The translations under genes and the position numbers were made by a program. The notes beneath the pieces were generated by a model. The model searched no databases, had not been told where the DNA came from, and saw nothing but the letters and a program-made list of their open reading frames with translations. DNA of 63,773 bases, the filler included, from Bigelowiella natans CCMP2755 (lineage: Eukaryota; Protista; Cercozoa): assembly GCA_000320545.1 (NCBI GenBank). It is 4 parts of 4 records of this genome, joined end to end, with 100 filler letters (N's around TTAATTAATTAA, not from the genome) between each part and the next. Parts side by side here need not be neighbours in the genome. Positions count along the whole stretch, not along the records: positions 1 to 28,093 come from ADNK01000983.1; 3 more parts are not named here. One strand, 5' to 3'. Shown in pieces: positions 2,982 to 28,093 of the stretch. The first letter of the stretch is position 1, and every line of letters starts with the position of its first letter.

Positions 2982-3022
<41 letters not shown>

Positions 3023-3436
3023 GAGAATTTGAACAGTAAATAGAGGCAGTGGATAAGAATTAGAATGATAATAAGATGGATAAGACTGCATGCAATTCTT
3101 GTCTTTCAACCATCGAAATCATGCATCAAATATAAGAATTCAATAAAATTAAAGAATAAATGTTGGAAAAGTATTCTTGTTATTATTATTATTATTAGTA
3201 GTAGTAGTAGCAGCAATACACGTCATGTTGATCTTGTGGAAAACTGTCGACAGAATCTATATCCATGTTCCATTCTTGATCTTCTTTGCATACACTACGA
3301 ACAAGCTTCTTGCATTCATGCCTAAATGAATGTAATTATGGATGGATGGATGGATGGATGGATGGACGACAATATCTATTAGTGAGGAGGACAATAATGT
3401 TGATTAATTATGACAATATGTATTCATTCCTTATGT

Positions 3437-9847: not shown

Positions 9848-10687
9848 GTAAATTAGCTTCCATGCTACAATACTTGCCAAAACCTTTTCTTTTTGCTGTA
9901 GTTGATTTGTTGCATTGTTACGTATTTATATCTTACTACTGTTGATTTGTTGCATTGTTACGTATTTATATCTTACTACTGTTGATTTGTTGCATTATTA
10001 CGTATTTATGTCTTACTACTGTTGATTTGTTGCATTATTACGTATTTATATCTTACTACTGTTGATTTGTTGCATTATTACGTATTTATGTCTTACTACT
10101 GTTGATTTGTTGCATTGTTACGTATTTATATCTTACTACTGTTGATTTGTTGCATTATTACGTATTTATGTCTTACTACTGTTGATTTGTTGCATTGTTA
10201 CGTATTTTATATCTTACTACTGTTGATTTGTTGCATTGTTACGTATTTATGTCTTACTACTGTTGATTTGTTGCATTATTACGTATTTATGTCTTACCAC
10301 TACAAATTCTCAAGGTTGAGGAGGAGGATGCATGGGGTTTTCTTACTTCTTCTAAATACAAACCAGGAAACGACGAAAATACGAGCAAAATATGAGGAAA
10401 ATGAAAGACAAAGGTGCTGCTGCTGCTGCTGCTGATTTGATACTAATGATGTGGCTTGAATCATCGATCAATCTTGATTTTGAGCTTCTTTATTGCATAG
10501 TAATGTAGATAAAGACTCCAGTAGTAAATATTCGTCTTCGCTTTCTGCTGCTTCTATTTTGAGACAGCAGCTGGCATCGTCATCATCATCATCATCATCA
10601 TTTTCATCATCATCACTTTCATCATCACTACCCAATTGCTGTTTTGCTCATCATCCTTTTAAACATCATCATTCATAATCATCCTTC

Positions 10688-20392: not shown

Positions 20393-22396
20393 CTAGACAT
20401 GTGTTGCATCAGCTTCTGGATCGTTTGTTTGAAAAGAAGGAGCGTCTTGATTATTACTGGATTCACCAGCCAGTTGAGCTAAATCCCGGATATTTGATAT
20501 TTGATCTGCTGAAATGCTTTCCACAGCGTTGTGGTAAGATACTATATTTTCCCATTTCATCTGGTCACGCACCTTTTTCCACCTAAGAAATGAGCGCCGT
20601 GTTCTTGCAACCCTGTCCATATTCGGAGTAACGACGTCGCCACTTGTTTTGGGAGGATGGTCCTTGATGTATTGTCGTACCGTGATGTTTTGGCTAACTG
20701 CAGCAGCTTGGAGAGCAGCACCAAGGGCTGCAGATTCTGCTTCTTCCAGCGAAGAAACCGGAGAATTGAACAAGTCCGCAAATATTTGCCTCCAGAGAGG
20801 GTTCCTTGATCCGCCCCCCACAAGATTTATACCATTGGCCTCATTACAACCATCATTGCTCGGAGGAGTGCCTACCATTTCTAAGTATCCTTCAAAGATA
20901 GCAAAGGTAACACCCTCAAGTGCTGCTCGATATAGTAATCCGGGTCTTTTCAACATACCAGGACGAATGCCATACAGCACACCGCTAGAAAGGGGCTCAT
21001 TTGGTGTCCTTTCTCCGTTAAGGTAGGGGATGAAAACGATGCCTTCACATCCAATCTCTTCATTTTGAGCTAATTCAGTTATCTCATCTCTGGACATACT
21101 ACCCCCCCCAAATGTCTTCCTAATCTCCTCGGGAACGGTTGCACAATTTTGTGTGCAAACAAGGGGTAAATTGGACCCAAGAGCGTCACAGAAACTGGAT
21201 ATCAGTTCGGAATGCACTGACTTCTCTGACGAACAGAAAATCGTTCCTGAGGTGCCCAAAGATGCTACATACCTCCCACTTTCAACTGCACCAGCTCCAA
21301 GGGCAGCCATCATATTATCACCAGATCCTGCAGCAACAATGACGTCTAGAGGTAGGCCTAGGCTAGTTGCAACCTCTGGTTTCAGATTTCCTACTTTCTG
21401 GTTCGGATCTTGAAGACTTTCTGGAAAATATTTTTCGAACCCAAGCTCCGCCATGAGTTTGGCATCCCATTTTTTGTTGTCAACGTCCAAGAGTCCAGTG
21501 CCACTGGCATCTCCAGCTTCCATAACAAACTTGCCCGTCAGATAAAAGTTCAAGTAGTCATGTGGAAGCATACATTTTGAAAGCCTATTGAAGTTCCCAG
21601 GTTCATGCTTCTTCATCCATAGCATTTTCGAACTCGTAAAAGCAGGGAATATAACTCGTCTAGGTGAAGTCATAGCTTCGATTTCTTCTGCTTCTTTTGA
21701 GGATGTAGTATCACACCAGAGCTTGCATGGTCGAATGACATGACCACCATCATCCACAGGAACGAACCCGTGCTGTTGTCCAGACACTGAAATAGCTTTC
21801 ACCTTATCGGAATCTAATCCATCTAAGGCATCTTTTACGGCCTCTTCTAATGCCCTTATCCAAGTTCCTACATCTTGCTCCGCACATCTAGGATCTTCGT
21901 TCGGTAGTATATCGTATGCGCGTGATCCTCGCCCAACCACTTTTTGAGTTTCCGTATCCAATACAACTACTTTCGTACTTTGCGTCCCGCAATCAATACC
22001 AATGGTAAGATGAGACGATAACTTGAAATCAGAAGAAGAAGAACGAGAAGAGGACGAAGAGATACTGCGAGGAGTAGCTCTGTAGGTGCTGATCCGTTGA
22101 GGTCGATCTAGACGTCGTCGAAACCCACGATTGCAATTAGCAACATCTGCACAAATTGCAACTTTGTAGGGAGAATTTCTTCCAAGGAATGAATTTGTAG
22201 TAGCTGTTGTTACTGTGCCTATCCCTATTGTTTTTGTTTTTAACTCTCGGGGTACGAGGTTGTCGGGCATCAGATTTATCAGAAAAATCACTGTGCAGAC
22301 AATGATAATTAACGCGCTGTTCCTGCAAATGGTCCTGATCATTTTGTGGTATATCCAATCGCCATTTCTCTCTTTTATGAAAGCTCCACCCTCCAT
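20393..22396 (-). CDS. xylB: Xylulokinase (FGGY kinase, bacterial XylB type), intronless, with ~125-aa N-terminal leader
   Basis: 667-aa ORF with IGIDCGTQSTKVVVLD, ISVSGQQHG, KLWCDT, GSGDNMMAALGAG, SLGTSGT, PYLNGERTP and VGGGSRNPLWRQIFAD. Confidence 0.93.
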   Translation of the reverse strand: MEGGAFIKERNGDWIYHKMIRTICRNSALIIIVCTVIFLINLMPDNLVPRELKTKTIGIGTVTTATTNSFLGRNSPYKVAICADVANCNRGFRRRLDRPQRISTYRATPRSISSSSSRSSSSDFKLSSHLTIGIDCGTQSTKVVVLDTETQKVVGRGSRAYDILPNEDPRCAEQDVGTWIRALEEAVKDALDGLDSDKVKAISVSGQQHGFVPVDDGGHVIRPCKLWCDTTSSKEAEEIEAMTSPRRVIFPAFTSSKMLWMKKHEPGNFNRLSKCMLPHDYLNFYLTGKFVMEAGDASGTGLLDVDNKKWDAKLMAELGFEKYFPESLQDPNQKVGNLKPEVATSLGLPLDVIVAAGSGDNMMAALGAGAVESGRYVASLGTSGTIFCSSEKSVHSELISSFCDALGSNLPLVCTQNCATVPEEIRKTFGGGSMSRDEITELAQNEEIGCEGIVFIPYLNGERTPNEPLSSGVLYGIRPGMLKRPGLLYRAALEGVTFAIFEGYLEMVGTPPSNDGCNEANGINLVGGGSRNPLWRQIFADLFNSPVSSLEEAESAALGAALQAAAVSQNITVRQYIKDHPPKTSGDVVTPNMDRVARTRRSFLRWKKVRDQMKWENIVSYHNAVESISADQISNIRDLAQLAGESSNNQDAPSFQTNDPEADATHV

Positions 22397-22880: not shown

Positions 22881-24471
22881 TTGAGGGTGCAAAGAAAAGG
22901 TTGCATCGAAGAGCGAACGAGGGATTTCAAAGAAATGAAAAGTCAACAGAAAAACGATTCATTCGAAGACTACGAAGTCGAAAGGTTTCATGTTTCAAGA
23001 ACAATTATTACCCTAATAATATCTGTGTCACTTGTCGATGGTCGTACGAGCATTTTGTATTGCTTAGAATAATACTTTCGCGCTATAACGTGGACGGTGA
23101 ACTGCAATACCTGATCAAGTGGAAGGGCTACAAAGGAGAAGACAACACTTGGGAGCCAAGCAGCAACATATCGCCAGAGCTTATTGAGGCTTTCAACAAG
23201 GTAGTTAGCTACTAGAATGTACATCTTCTACAGTCTTTCCTCCACAACAAGCTTGTAGATATCGGTAAGAAGAATAAAAGCCAACCCAACAATATAATTC
23301 AGAAAGCGAAAAATGGAGACATGAGCTCCAGTTCAGATCCTGGCTACGCCTTAGCCAGCCCAAGTGCTTCGAAAAGGAATAGGATAATTACCAGGAGTGG
23401 TATCGCATCTGCTAATGCTTCGACTACTACCGTGGCCATCAGGGGCGGCATCAATAATACAGTGAAGGAAATCAATCTTCCACAGCAGAGACAGGCGGAC
23501 CATTACCAGCAAGAAACGCAAAATAGAGTGAATACTATGACACAAGAGATCCATTCCTCCACCTCAGATGCCAACGCCACATCTGCCATAAGTGGGAAGG
23601 ACAGCTTCGGTAATATTAGTAGTATTCCTCCACCGCCTACTCCTGAATCAGGAGAAGAGGTTCAAAACCTGCGAGTTCTACTTGAAATGGCAGGATCGCA
23701 CTTCGCTGGACTAGGGCATGTGATCAAGACCCTCGCAACAATTAGCAGCAGCAGCAGCAGCAGATCTGTCGATTGTGCTGGGAATATAGTAAGTACAGAG
23801 CATTTGTAATAGCACCACCACCATTGTCAGTAGTGATAGCAATGGTAGCACGACACACATCAACAAAGAACACATTCTATTTAATATAATGAGACGAAAA
23901 CAATCAATAAATTTGATGATGATCGAAACTATTCGAATAAGATTAATAATGATTATAATAAGGGGCACTTTGAGAAAGTTATACCCAAACGGAATGACAG
24001 CAGAGGCAGCATAGTATTCCTTGATTTTAAAAGATTTTTTTGGAACATTTCACCATATACCTCTTCGTTGCTGTTTCTTCTTTGTACAATTACCAGCCTG
24101 GAGTAATAGACTCAGTGATTGTTGCTACTCTTCTTGTTCGTATCATTTGCAGCAATTAGCCAATGATCTATCGAGATTGCGTCAGGAGAATAGTGAACTA
24201 CAAGCGCGTGTTGATAAGTGCACTCGGGATTCTGAACAGGTTACTATAATATATTGCCAACGCTCCTACCGATTGATGAAGCCAGCATACTCGACGATCA
24301 CATAACTCTTTCAACTACATCTTGTATCTTAGAGAAATCTTGTGCGCGATCGCCATGGTTTTATTCTGCGCAAAGAGAGAGTTAACAAGCTGAATGGGAT
24401 GCAGAGCACGCTGACAAAACGACTTGAAGAAATAAAACAGTCCGTAAATACATACAATATTAATTATATAA

Positions 24472-25184: not shown

Positions 25185-26291
25185 TATTTGAAAGTTAGTT
25201 AATTGTTGCATTTGTTACTAATAATACACATCCTCATTTTTGCGAATTTAAAAATCATACGAAGAAAGATCTAATGGTTAGTGTTCTACACGCATCGCCT
25301 AGATGTAGCAGGGCATGAATTATCGTTCTGCTGGTTCCGATATTGCTTGATGTAGATTCCTGAGAAGCTTTATAAAAAAACTATGATGATACCGTACGAG
25401 TCTTATAAGAATAGGTCTCCACTAGGATCTCCCCACTAAAATAATTTCTCGAAACAATAACATAGATATCGGAGTTAAAGAAGAAGATTGCCAGGATAAA
25501 TCATCAAGGTCACTAATTAATTATTAAGATACTTTGATAAACACGAGAAAGCAAAAATTTAACAAGTTTGCGTTTATAAATAGGAAAATGCGAGAGAGGT
25601 CAAGATGATAGCTTTGCTACTGTCTCCGGTACTTCATCTAAAAATCACACTGAGAAGCGAGAGAGAGATTCAGTTCAAGGTGTCATTCAGCCACCTCTGA
25701 AAAAAAGGCCGAATTGACCATTTTTGGCAACTTCACAGTTCGACATGTGCAAGTGTATAAATATCATGCATCATTGGACTGATGGCCTTCCTTGTCAACA
25801 TACTTGTACACGGATTTAAATCAAAGCTTTTACGGAAGTATTAGCTAGCACATGTACCCAACTAGCCAATGCATGCGCACGTACACATCAAGCTTCAGCC
25901 TAGAATGCTGAAAGAAAAAAGACGCAAAGCTTGCAAGATGTGGATCAGCATTAGATTTCGATCAATCGGGCTGGACTGCATCGCATGCTGCACAACGGGA
26001 TGCATGTAGCGATCAAATGACCGCGGAACCGCATGCCTGCTGAACTGCTCGCTGTCGCTGCGAGCGCATCATCTGCCCGCACAGCCGCTGCGCATGCATG
26101 TAGCTGGACACAACTAGACAATGCAGCTTTGCCAAGCTGAATCAGGATGACAATTGAAAAAATTCAACGCATTCATTGCATCGATCCGTCTCATGCTAGC
26201 ATGCATGATGGAGAATCGAATGGCGAATGATGCTTTGTGTGCGCAATCGATGAAACACTGACCTCATGCATGCAAATGGCACACAAGGCAA

Positions 26292-26706
26292 TGTCAGCGG
26301 TCTGGCCGCGCCACCCACGATCAAGGAGCTGTCGCAGCATGCGCACGTCCACTCGTGCTGCACGCTGCGCTGCGCACATGCGCATGGAAGTTCTCAGAAC
26401 TTCGGGAATCTTCGAGAAGCTTCGAGAATCTTCCAGAAGCTTCGAGAACATTCCGGAAGATTCGAGAATCTTCCAGAATCTTCGAGAGCATTCCGGAAGC
26501 TTCGAGAATCTTCCAGAGAATTCGAGAGAATTCTGGAAGATTCGAGAATCTTCGCGAATGCGCCGGAACCCAATGCGCACATGCATGCAGCGCAAGTCAC
26601 AAGTCATCAAAGAATTCAAACGCACACAGGACCGCGTGTTGACACTCAGTGACATCAGCACAGTCCCGCGCACAAAAGCTAAGCAGCTACCGCAAGCCCG
26701 CTAAAA
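26292..26706 (+). repeat. 5' LTR (~415 bp)
   Basis: Begins TGTCAGCGG and ends CCGCTAAAA, an imperfect inverted repeat (implied consensus TGTTAGCGG...CCGCTAACA). The PBS follows immediately. Confidence 0.75.
26391..26560. promoter_or_regulatory. Heat-shock-element (nTTCnnGAAn) array inside the LTR
   Basis: 17 consecutive 10-bp units all start with TTC. Thirteen are perfect TTCnnGAA, three are TTCnnGAG, and the first is degenerate. Confidence 0.8.
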
Positions 26707-26717
26707 GGTTATGAGCC
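26707..26717 (+). other. Primer-binding site GGTTATGAGCC (internal tRNA-iMet fragment type)
   Basis: GGTTATG(A/G)GCC directly after the LTR is the PBS of copia elements primed by a half initiator-Met tRNA. Confidence 0.85.
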
Positions 26718-26889
26718 TCAAGAGGACTTGCTAGAGAACCAACTCAGAAAAGAACCAAGCAACCCCCCACCCCCCTTCAGCTACATCCTTCCAGAAGAAG
26801 GAACTGAAAGCGACAACAGCATTCCCTCAGCCAATCTTCGGTCAAGCCTCCAAAGCACTGAAAAACAAAGAAAATAGGAACGAAACAAC

Positions 26890-28093
26890 ATGTCAGAAAA
26901 GCAGATAGACTCCCTACTAAAAAAACTTCACCCTCAAGTACGATGGTAGCAACTACAAGCCCTACATGTACAAGCTAATGTCTGCCTTTGAAGCAGCGGA
27001 TTTGGAATCATGCTTCAATGTCAACATAGAAATAGAAGGAAAGGTGACAGAAGTCAATGTACGCACCGACCCCGCTCACCGACGAGAAGTACTCAAGCTA
27101 TCCCCGGAGCAATTCGATATCCTCAATCCCAAACCTGAAGGAAGAGGATCACAAGAAAAGATAAACAAAAGAAAGAGAGGAAGATTCTTCCTCACTGCTA
27201 CCCTTCCTGATAAATTCTTCGATCTACTCGAAGGAAAACCCAAAGACGTAGCAGTTACCTTAGCAGCCTTGCTGGAGAAGTACGAGCCTACCAATCCTGT
27301 AGCCGTCAGGAAACTTTATTCGAAACTAAGTGATATAAACATGGGTCAGTACAATGGAGACTTCACAAAGTATCATTCTGACCTTGACTCGACGATCAGA
27401 AGACTTCGGGCACAGCACGAAGGGTACTCCGACAACCAAGCGCTTGCCACTCTACTTCGAGGACTTGTACCTAGCGAAAAATACGAGACTATAGTTACAG
27501 TCATCAACAACAAGAAAGATGTTACCTTCGACTCTGCAGTGGACATGATCCGCTCCCACATAAACTCCCGATCATTAGATGACGGGCAGAGACCTTCAAA
27601 GAAACATGCAGGACACACCAGTGCAGAACACAAATACGTGAAGATGTACGATGGCTTGGAGAAAAGGCTAAACGAACTTACAGGTCAGCTGAAGACCTAC
27701 AAGAGGAAATTCAAAAAGGGAAAGAACAGATACAACAGCGAAGCATATCAAGACAATTCCAAGAAGCAAAAGAGAGAAGACTATTTCTTGAACTTAAAGA
27801 AAAGAACAAAATGCCATTACTGTGGCAAGAAAGGACATTGGGAAAAGGAATGCAGAAACAAGATGAGAGATGAAGGCAAGCAGAACAAAGGAAAACACTA
27901 TTCTTTTATTGATCATGGCTCCCCTTCCCAAAGACCCTCTTACATTAATAAGATGGCACGCGACAATTCTTACCTGCAAACGCTGAAGTACAACCATAAG
28001 CCTTTGATCCTTCTCGACAGCGGAGCCAACAACCACTTCTTCTGCGACCGCGACTTCTTCAACGAGTTGAAACCTATTCAACCACGATACATA
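26890..28093 (+). CDS. gag-pol: Copia Gag-protease polyprotein (partial; +1 frameshift at A7 run 26919-26925)
   Basis: KYDGSNYKPY (gag N-terminal motif), UBN2-like helical core (VRKLYSKL..YSDNQALATLLRGL..YETIVTVI), CHYCGKKGHWEKEC zinc knuckle, ILLDSGANNHFF protease. Confidence 0.9.

Follow-up and report, generated by a model that had tools for sequence, protein, structure and literature searches.

A phased array of heat-shock-element units in the LTR of a young Ty1/copia family of the rhizarian alga Bigelowiella natans: a candidate HSF-binding enhancer

A Ty1/copia retrotransposon in the genome of the rhizarian alga Bigelowiella natans CCMP2755 carries in its LTR an array of 16 exactly phased 10-bp units of the form nTTCnnGAAn, with the canonical 2-bp gap between triplets. 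On the evidence assembled below, this array is probably an HSF-binding enhancer or promoter, built by a copia lineage that amplified a short heat-shock element (HSE). We infer HSF binding, which is the best-supported reading of the motif, together with heat induction, a position of the array upstream of the transcription start, and an effect of array length on output.

The array lies in a stretch of 63,773 nucleotides, filler included (hereafter ‘the window’), made up of four parts of four records of NCBI GenBank assembly GCA_000320545.1 joined end to end; positions 1 to 28,093 come from ADNK01000983.1 (contig C2754), and coordinates without a contig name count along the whole window (Table 1). 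The contig starts with 14.7 copies of the telomeric repeat CCCTAA (3-90), so that this part of the window represents a chromosome end, and the first ∼20 kb are unusually rich in di- and trinucleotide microsatellites, in addition to a 40-bp minisatellite of 10 copies (9901-10301). An intronless ORF of 667 aa on the minus strand (20393-22396) encodes an FGGY-family sugar kinase (Pfam FGGY_N and FGGY_C), and a short plus-strand ORF near it (22901-23215) has chromodomain-like sequence at its end.

Table 1. Coordinates of the retrotransposon, its LTR and its transcripts in the window.
Feature	Position	Strand	Basis
Target-site duplication GGCAA, left copy, 5 bp	26287-26291	.	Repeated after the 3′ LTR, C2753:3847-3851
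5′ LTR, Ty1/copia subfamily A, 415 bp, TGTCAGC...GCTAAAA	26292-26706	+	Copy alignment, genome search
Conserved LTR segment 5′ of the array	26292-26399	+	Cross-copy comparison
GAA/TTC/GAA triplets, one base off the main-array phase	26387-26399	.	Sequence read directly
HSE array, 16 phased units	26400-26559	.	Direct reading and Tandem Repeats Finder
Sense poly(A) site, R/U5 border (weak)	26629	+	One RNA contig, run X5, continues into 23 A
Primer-binding site, complementary to the anticodon stem-loop part of a tRNA-Met	26707-26722	+	Complementarity 15/16
Five antisense introns across gag: 26858-27070, 27135-27258, 27326-27382, 27471-27525, 27594-27973	26858-27973	-	RNA joints
Start of gag-pol polyprotein frame, cut by contig end	26966-28093	+	Open frame

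The 16 units provide 32 alternating pentamer slots at 5-bp spacing, occupied by 16 TTC, 13 GAA and three GAG triplets; 29 of the 32 triplets are perfect, and the longest unbroken perfect stretch in the window array spans 17 pentamers. Counted by unit, TTC is present in 16/16, GA in 16/16 and the final A in 13/16 (G in three), with positions 2-4 and 7-8 invariant, positions 1, 5, 6 and 10 variable, and 13 distinct unit types among the 16. Tandem Repeats Finder reports a period of 10 with 16.5 copies at 26396-26559, together with higher-order periodicity at 20 bp and at 40 bp (89% match at 40 bp). The original prediction, made from the sequence alone, had counted 17 units in exact phase; 16 are exact, and the seventeenth (26390-26399), like the GAA that precedes it (26387-26389), is out of register by one base, which is why we count 16 rather than 17. 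The start of the array, previously placed at 26391, is corrected to 26390/26400. The proposed HSE-type motif itself stands, as the array fits the HSE consensus of at least three adjoining, alternating nGAAn/nTTCn pentamers and variation among the window units is concentrated on the n positions.

An array of this kind is far beyond chance. A scan of the other 26.2 kb of contig C2754 found no perfect three-pentamer HSE, and a search of the genome (91.4 Mb in 3736 contigs) with a seven-pentamer pattern of 33 positions returned 466 matches, against 0 for the reversed control.

If the triplets are the part of the unit that matters, changes should fall preferentially elsewhere. Mutational steps were counted on a minimum spanning tree of distinct unit types and tested with a binomial against the expected 40%. 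In subfamily A, which includes the window element, 13 steps fell on the four n positions and 2 on the six core positions (p = 2.8e-4), and with four lineages pooled the counts were 24 and 9 (p = 1.4e-4); these values are to be read with the caveat that the 20/40-bp block duplication makes the unit pattern partly inherited and the units, therefore, not independent. The GAA and TTC positions do not vary as freely as the spacers, an outcome that would have told against the original prediction; the steps cluster on the n positions. Across 70 units from the four lineages, positions 3, 4 and 8 are invariant (70/70) and position 7 is altered twice, the frequent core changes being confined to the symmetric outer bases (TTC to CTC at position 2 and GAA to GAG at position 9). 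These outer bases are the least constrained HSE positions in HSE consensus studies. The core bases are able to mutate, as private C-to-T changes at TTCG (TTC to TTT, a CpG) occur in single dead copies; a comparison of private with shared mutations, used as a neutral control, yielded only three usable events, one at an n position and two in the core. Conservation of phase and length steps of 10 bp are, for their part, expected of any 10-bp minisatellite.

The element that carries the array can be assigned with some detail. LTR borders were set by alignment of 30 copies. An LTR 100% identical to that in the window lies at the start of the adjoining contig (C2753:3432-3846) and is followed by GGCAA, so the element has been split by an assembly gap; matching 5-bp target duplications were found for seven elements, namely this one and six other full-length copies. 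The full-length copy on C2038 has an ORF of 1455 aa, with Pfam matches to Retrotran_gag_2 (80-198), Pol_BBD (349-432), rve (583-678; 28.8 bits, under the Pfam cut-off of 32.6) and RVT_2 (933-1183), in that order. This succession of gag, Pol beta-barrel, integrase core and RVT_2, that is, gag-PR-INT-RT with the integrase ahead of the RT, identifies the element as Ty1/copia. The primer-binding site is complementary, at 15 of 16 bases, to approximately nt 25-40 of the tRNA-Met(CAT) genes at C1772 and C2965, which by their look we take to be of the initiator type; half-tRNA priming, as with this site, is the mode of Drosophila copia. A G-rich polypurine tract lies immediately 5′ of every 3′ LTR. 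Domain order, target duplications and the tRNA-Met primer site thus bear out the copia LTR of the original prediction, as the identity of the organism does its protist host. An HSF ORF of this genome is identical to a B. natans protein (JGI Bigna1 model and MMETSP/EukProt entries), a match that overrides the diatom origin to which the telomere type and the paucity of introns might have pointed. An apparent gag frameshift at an A-run (26914-26920), where RNA contigs are one A shorter, was rejected: C2038 has the same run with an ORF that is intact when read from the ATG that follows, and the RNA contigs with one A fewer derive from another variant than the window copy.

Conservation within the LTR is highest 5′ of the array, where the conserved segment is identical between subfamilies A and B at 108/108 positions, between the window and an environmental contig (described below) at 104/108, and in the divergent 19-unit lineage L064 at 93/108 (86%), as against 84-89% for the 147 bp 3′ of the array in the same comparisons. 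Subfamily A harbors, in addition, a further HSE-type array, in which one 10-bp unit is repeated four times to give 8 perfect pentamers (L035 (C2753) 3005-3042 and L036 5810-5847). It is located 3′ of the pol stop, in a non-coding stretch of ∼1.07 kb that extends to the 3′ LTR; the window element’s own copy is the one at C2753:3005-3042, and the array is absent from the one subfamily B copy examined. Within this internal array and nearby, a palindromic 8-mer, TTCCAGAA (complement TTCTGGAA), is repeated in subfamily A.

A genome-wide census, based on two anchor patterns flanking the array, identified at least 75 LTRs. Twenty-four have 16 units (subfamily A, with LTR starts ∼6.1 kb apart) and 32 have about 10 units (subfamily B, with LTR starts 6.7 kb apart and one 11-bp unit that breaks the phase), while rarer variants of 8, 10, 11, 14, 17, 19 and 20 units are represented by one or two LTRs each. 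The comparison of array length across genomic copies that the original prediction called for therefore gives a range of 8-20 units. Multiplying per-LTR seven-pentamer counts by the census reproduces the 466 genome matches, from which it follows that host genes are without runs of such length: essentially all genomic runs of seven or more pentamers reside in one transposable-element family.

The family is very young, given that LTR pairs differ by 0 or 1 substitutions in seven subfamily A elements and by 0 in one subfamily B element; copies with intact frames of ∼1455-1489 codons are present, and the family is probably active. The LTRs of a subfamily B element (L037; C319, 521-7620) are identical and its frame intact, with mismatched 5-mers flanking its ends, and it may be a recombinant of two insertions. 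Array length changes fast, as indicated by one element whose two LTRs have 14 and 16 units, a 20-bp (two-unit) deletion being their sole difference. Beyond the cultured strain, an environmental relative (L084; metagenome contig Ga0073954_10008093, 49-342) has a related 3′ LTR in which the array comprises four units, followed by 760 bp of unrelated flank; wild populations thus contain the family in a form with far fewer units. Degenerate units are more frequent in the older 19-unit lineages than in the 16-unit lineage that is amplifying at present.

RNA from the family is abundant. At least half of the element’s sampled words are present in 14 sequencing runs, including eight probable B. natans RNA runs from three studies, and three marine metatranscriptomes contain 25-42% of its words. 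DNA runs X7 and X8, which derive from two other organisms, contain 75-78%. Contigs of three B. natans RNA runs and of one metatranscriptome were mapped on 25300-28093; summed contig depth on the element amounts to 10^3-10^5 in the three RNA runs, contig-derived depth being a poor measure of expression, and is zero in the mapped runs over the flank directly 5′ of the LTR (∼430 bp; bins 25864-26239). An expressed host gene (25394-25863, with a 75-nt GT..AG intron at 25507-25581) ends ∼430 bp 5′ of the LTR, and because it is both covered and spliced, the libraries represent RNA. The family is clearly not silent in apparently ordinary cultures, so that any induction would come on top of a high basal level; a literature search for a heat-stress study of B. 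natans found none.

Neither the ends of contigs nor changes of depth within the LTR revealed a transcription start, contigs being unsuited to this. The poly(A) site, seen in a single contig, lies 70 bp 3′ of the array, and the array could be located in U3 or in R, the latter being considered because the most conserved part of the LTR is 5′ of the array. RNA contigs from runs X5, X6 and X10 join the LTR end (26706/26707) to several different flanks, two of which resemble the sequence beside the C460 and C392 copies. Such transcripts, arising by read-through or by read-out initiated in the LTR, are compatible with the influence on neighbouring genes suggested in the original prediction.

The family also yields spliced antisense RNA, as shown by canonical minus-strand introns: the gag joints have CT..AC ends on the plus strand, reading GT...polypyrimidine tract...AG on the minus strand. 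All three B. natans culture RNA runs contain these joints, three of which recur in one marine metatranscriptome, and they constitute a sizeable share of local depth. Antisense exons 4 and 5, translated singly, have stops in all frames, which makes a coding role for this RNA improbable. The array has the same reading on either strand, and one may therefore speculate that antisense transcription is driven from the internal array or from that of the 3′ LTR.

Several of these observations would also be expected if the array were an HSE-derived minisatellite of neutral length, in which only an ancestor of ∼4 units is, or once was, functional and the promoter is effectively constitutive. Lengths vary freely among copies (8, 10, 11, 14, 16, 17, 19 and 20 units), within one element between otherwise identical LTRs, and down to the four units of the wild contig; in the commonest subfamily, B, the array is shorter and its phase broken; ordinary cultures contain much RNA of the family; and the 20/40-bp higher-order structure reflects recent block duplication. 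Neutral expansion fits less well with the occurrence of 13 unit types in 16 whose changes fall nearly all at n positions, from which it follows that the core was kept while the spacers diverged within the expanded array, and with the greater degeneracy of the older 19-unit lineages relative to the amplifying 16-unit lineage. We regard neutrality of length as unlikely.

For the array to act as proposed, the host should possess a matching factor and use the motif at its own genes. At least two HSF-type loci are present in the genome, and a 289-aa host HSF matches the solved DNA-binding domains of human HSF1/2/4 with E values of ∼1e-21 to 1e-19, its recognition helix being identical to theirs at 11 of 12 residues. 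Four paralogous intronless sHSP genes share an HSE block of 4-6 units ∼285 bp upstream of the ATG, which is kept in the most diverged paralogue despite its diverged flanking promoter; a second GAA-rich block lies closer to the gene at these loci (L055, L056, L058 and L059; C1679, C1597, C688 and C977). In relaxed scans, two cytosolic HSP70 paralogues have four-unit HSE-like sites at -237/-254 and -407/-423, compared with a background of 0 in contig C2754 for four units with at most one mismatch. A strict scan of 1.2-1.5 kb upstream of eight HSP70-family and two HSP90 loci found no perfect three-unit HSEs, and neither the two HSP90 genes nor the ER, mitochondrial and remaining HSP70s have a convincing HSE. 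Judged by these promoter sequences, the host employs the HSE motif at sHSP and HSP70 promoters.

The presence of two HSF-type loci, along with the repetition of the palindromic 8-mer in and near the internal array of subfamily A, could alternatively point to another factor that recognizes TTCnnGAA palindromes, or to a second HSF-type protein acting outside the heat-shock response. To our knowledge, no other eukaryotic factor family prefers long alternating inverted GAA triplets with 2-bp spacing, and the same pattern is found at the host sHSP promoters; it appears very unlikely. Finally, that the array is a structural element, forming RNA hairpins or cruciform DNA for packaging, strand transfer, 3′ end formation or small RNAs, is highly improbable despite the stable predicted RNA fold of 26380-26575 (-88.4 kcal/mol, z = -5.9 vs. 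shuffles), the 73% self-match of the array on the opposite strand and the presence of both sense and antisense RNAs, since self-complementarity is an automatic consequence of the HSE pattern, a hairpin would favour covariation of positions 1/10 and 5/6 whereas the n positions vary independently, and the same motif forms short, non-hairpin HSEs at host sHSP promoters.

Under the favoured explanation, that of an HSF-binding enhancer or promoter, a Ty1/copia family that is young, intact and transcribed would have amplified a canonical HSE block in tandem within its LTR. Host HSF trimers, about 10 of which could be accommodated by the 32 slots, would bind the alternating nGAAn/nTTCn pentamers cooperatively. 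Transcription from the LTR would thereby gain an enhancer or promoter element that works in either orientation, providing strong basal expression that proteotoxic or heat stress would raise further. Slippage or unequal exchange would alter the length of the array by 10 bp at a time, from four units, as in the wild relative, to 8-20, with active lineages retaining the TC and GA contact bases as the spacer bases drift. Longer is not clearly better, since subfamily B, which with 32 LTRs outnumbers the others, has arrays of only about 10 units whose phase is broken by 1 bp.

Tandem GAA-type pentamers bound by HSF are known from human satellite III, whose arrays are bound by HSF1 in nuclear stress bodies and transcribed; these are megabase direct repeats, rather than alternating inverted pentamers, and do not constitute the promoter of a mobile element. 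Closer in kind are ONSEN (ATCOPIA78), with five HSE-like cores within 49 bp (PMC13602373), and other heat-responsive COPIA families of Brassicaceae, which are likewise Ty1/copia elements with HSE-type motifs in their LTRs; ONSEN owes part of its heat responsiveness to these motifs (PMC13602373, PMC8376061). In comparison with ONSEN, the B. natans LTR has 32 slots in a 160-bp tandem array, approximately six times the motif count, evolves via duplication of units, resides in a rhizarian alga, and is known here from sequence and the presence of RNA. Independent evolution of the array is a reasonable presumption, because the LTR is probably too remote from those of plants for homology to ONSEN.

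HSEs have also entered elements of other types. Ty3/Mdg4 LTR elements of the flatworm Macrostomum lignano have one to four HSE motifs 5′ of mapped start sites, mutation of which showed them to be necessary for >250-fold heat induction, and their acquisition was described by the authors as convergent with that in plants (PMC12801592). The B. natans family resembles them in the independent acquisition of canonical HSEs in LTRs, and differs in its superfamily and in its contiguous, much longer array. Caenorhabditis Helitrons have spread HSEs and hold a large share of those in the genome (PMC6927752), much as the B. natans family holds nearly all runs of seven or more pentamers, though Helitrons are DNA transposons and their HSEs are dispersed, in contrast to an LTR array. 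Among protists, DIRS-1 of Dictyostelium discoideum is a retrotransposon with heat-shock-triggered transcription that includes an antisense transcript (PMC3950715); the B. natans family likewise has an antisense transcript, while DIRS-1 is a tyrosine-recombinase element with inverted repeats, for which a long phased HSE array is not described (PMC3950715). Heat-activated copia elements occur in Symbiodinium, where the paper does not report an HSE (PMC5776459). Since convergent capture of HSEs by LTR elements has been published for plants and flatworms (PMC12801592), the concept has precedents. The novelty of the present case lies in its host lineage (Rhizaria) and in its architecture, a long tandem array of phased units that occurs naturally in graded lengths.

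A more far-reaching proposal, which we consider distinctly unlikely, is that the array is a self-expanding HSF super-site, making this family the genome’s main HSF-binding sequence and at once a bidirectional stress enhancer and an HSF sink. Its attraction is arithmetic: at least 75 LTRs with 20-32 pentamers each would amount to ∼2000, vs. 4-6 per host stress promoter. Were it true, the enhancer would drive sense genomic RNA, spliced antisense RNA and read-out into neighbouring genes, the sink would set the amount of free HSF that reaches host heat-shock genes, and copy number and array length of the element would tune the alga’s heat-shock threshold.

Should heat not induce the family, the lesson would be that control by stress cannot be read from a motif array, however perfect. 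If the array does function through HSF, it would add Rhizaria, a supergroup in which transposable elements have hardly been studied, to the lineages whose LTR elements have captured HSEs. Arrays of 4, 8, 10, 14, 16 and 19-20 units offer a natural dosage series in which HSF occupancy and output could be related to the number of contiguous pentamers, and the system allows one to ask whether a single transposable-element family dominates a genome’s HSF-binding capacity. The family occurs in ocean metatranscriptomes and its host, a marine alga, grows in culture, so that mobilisation driven by temperature would bear on how genomes change as the seas warm.
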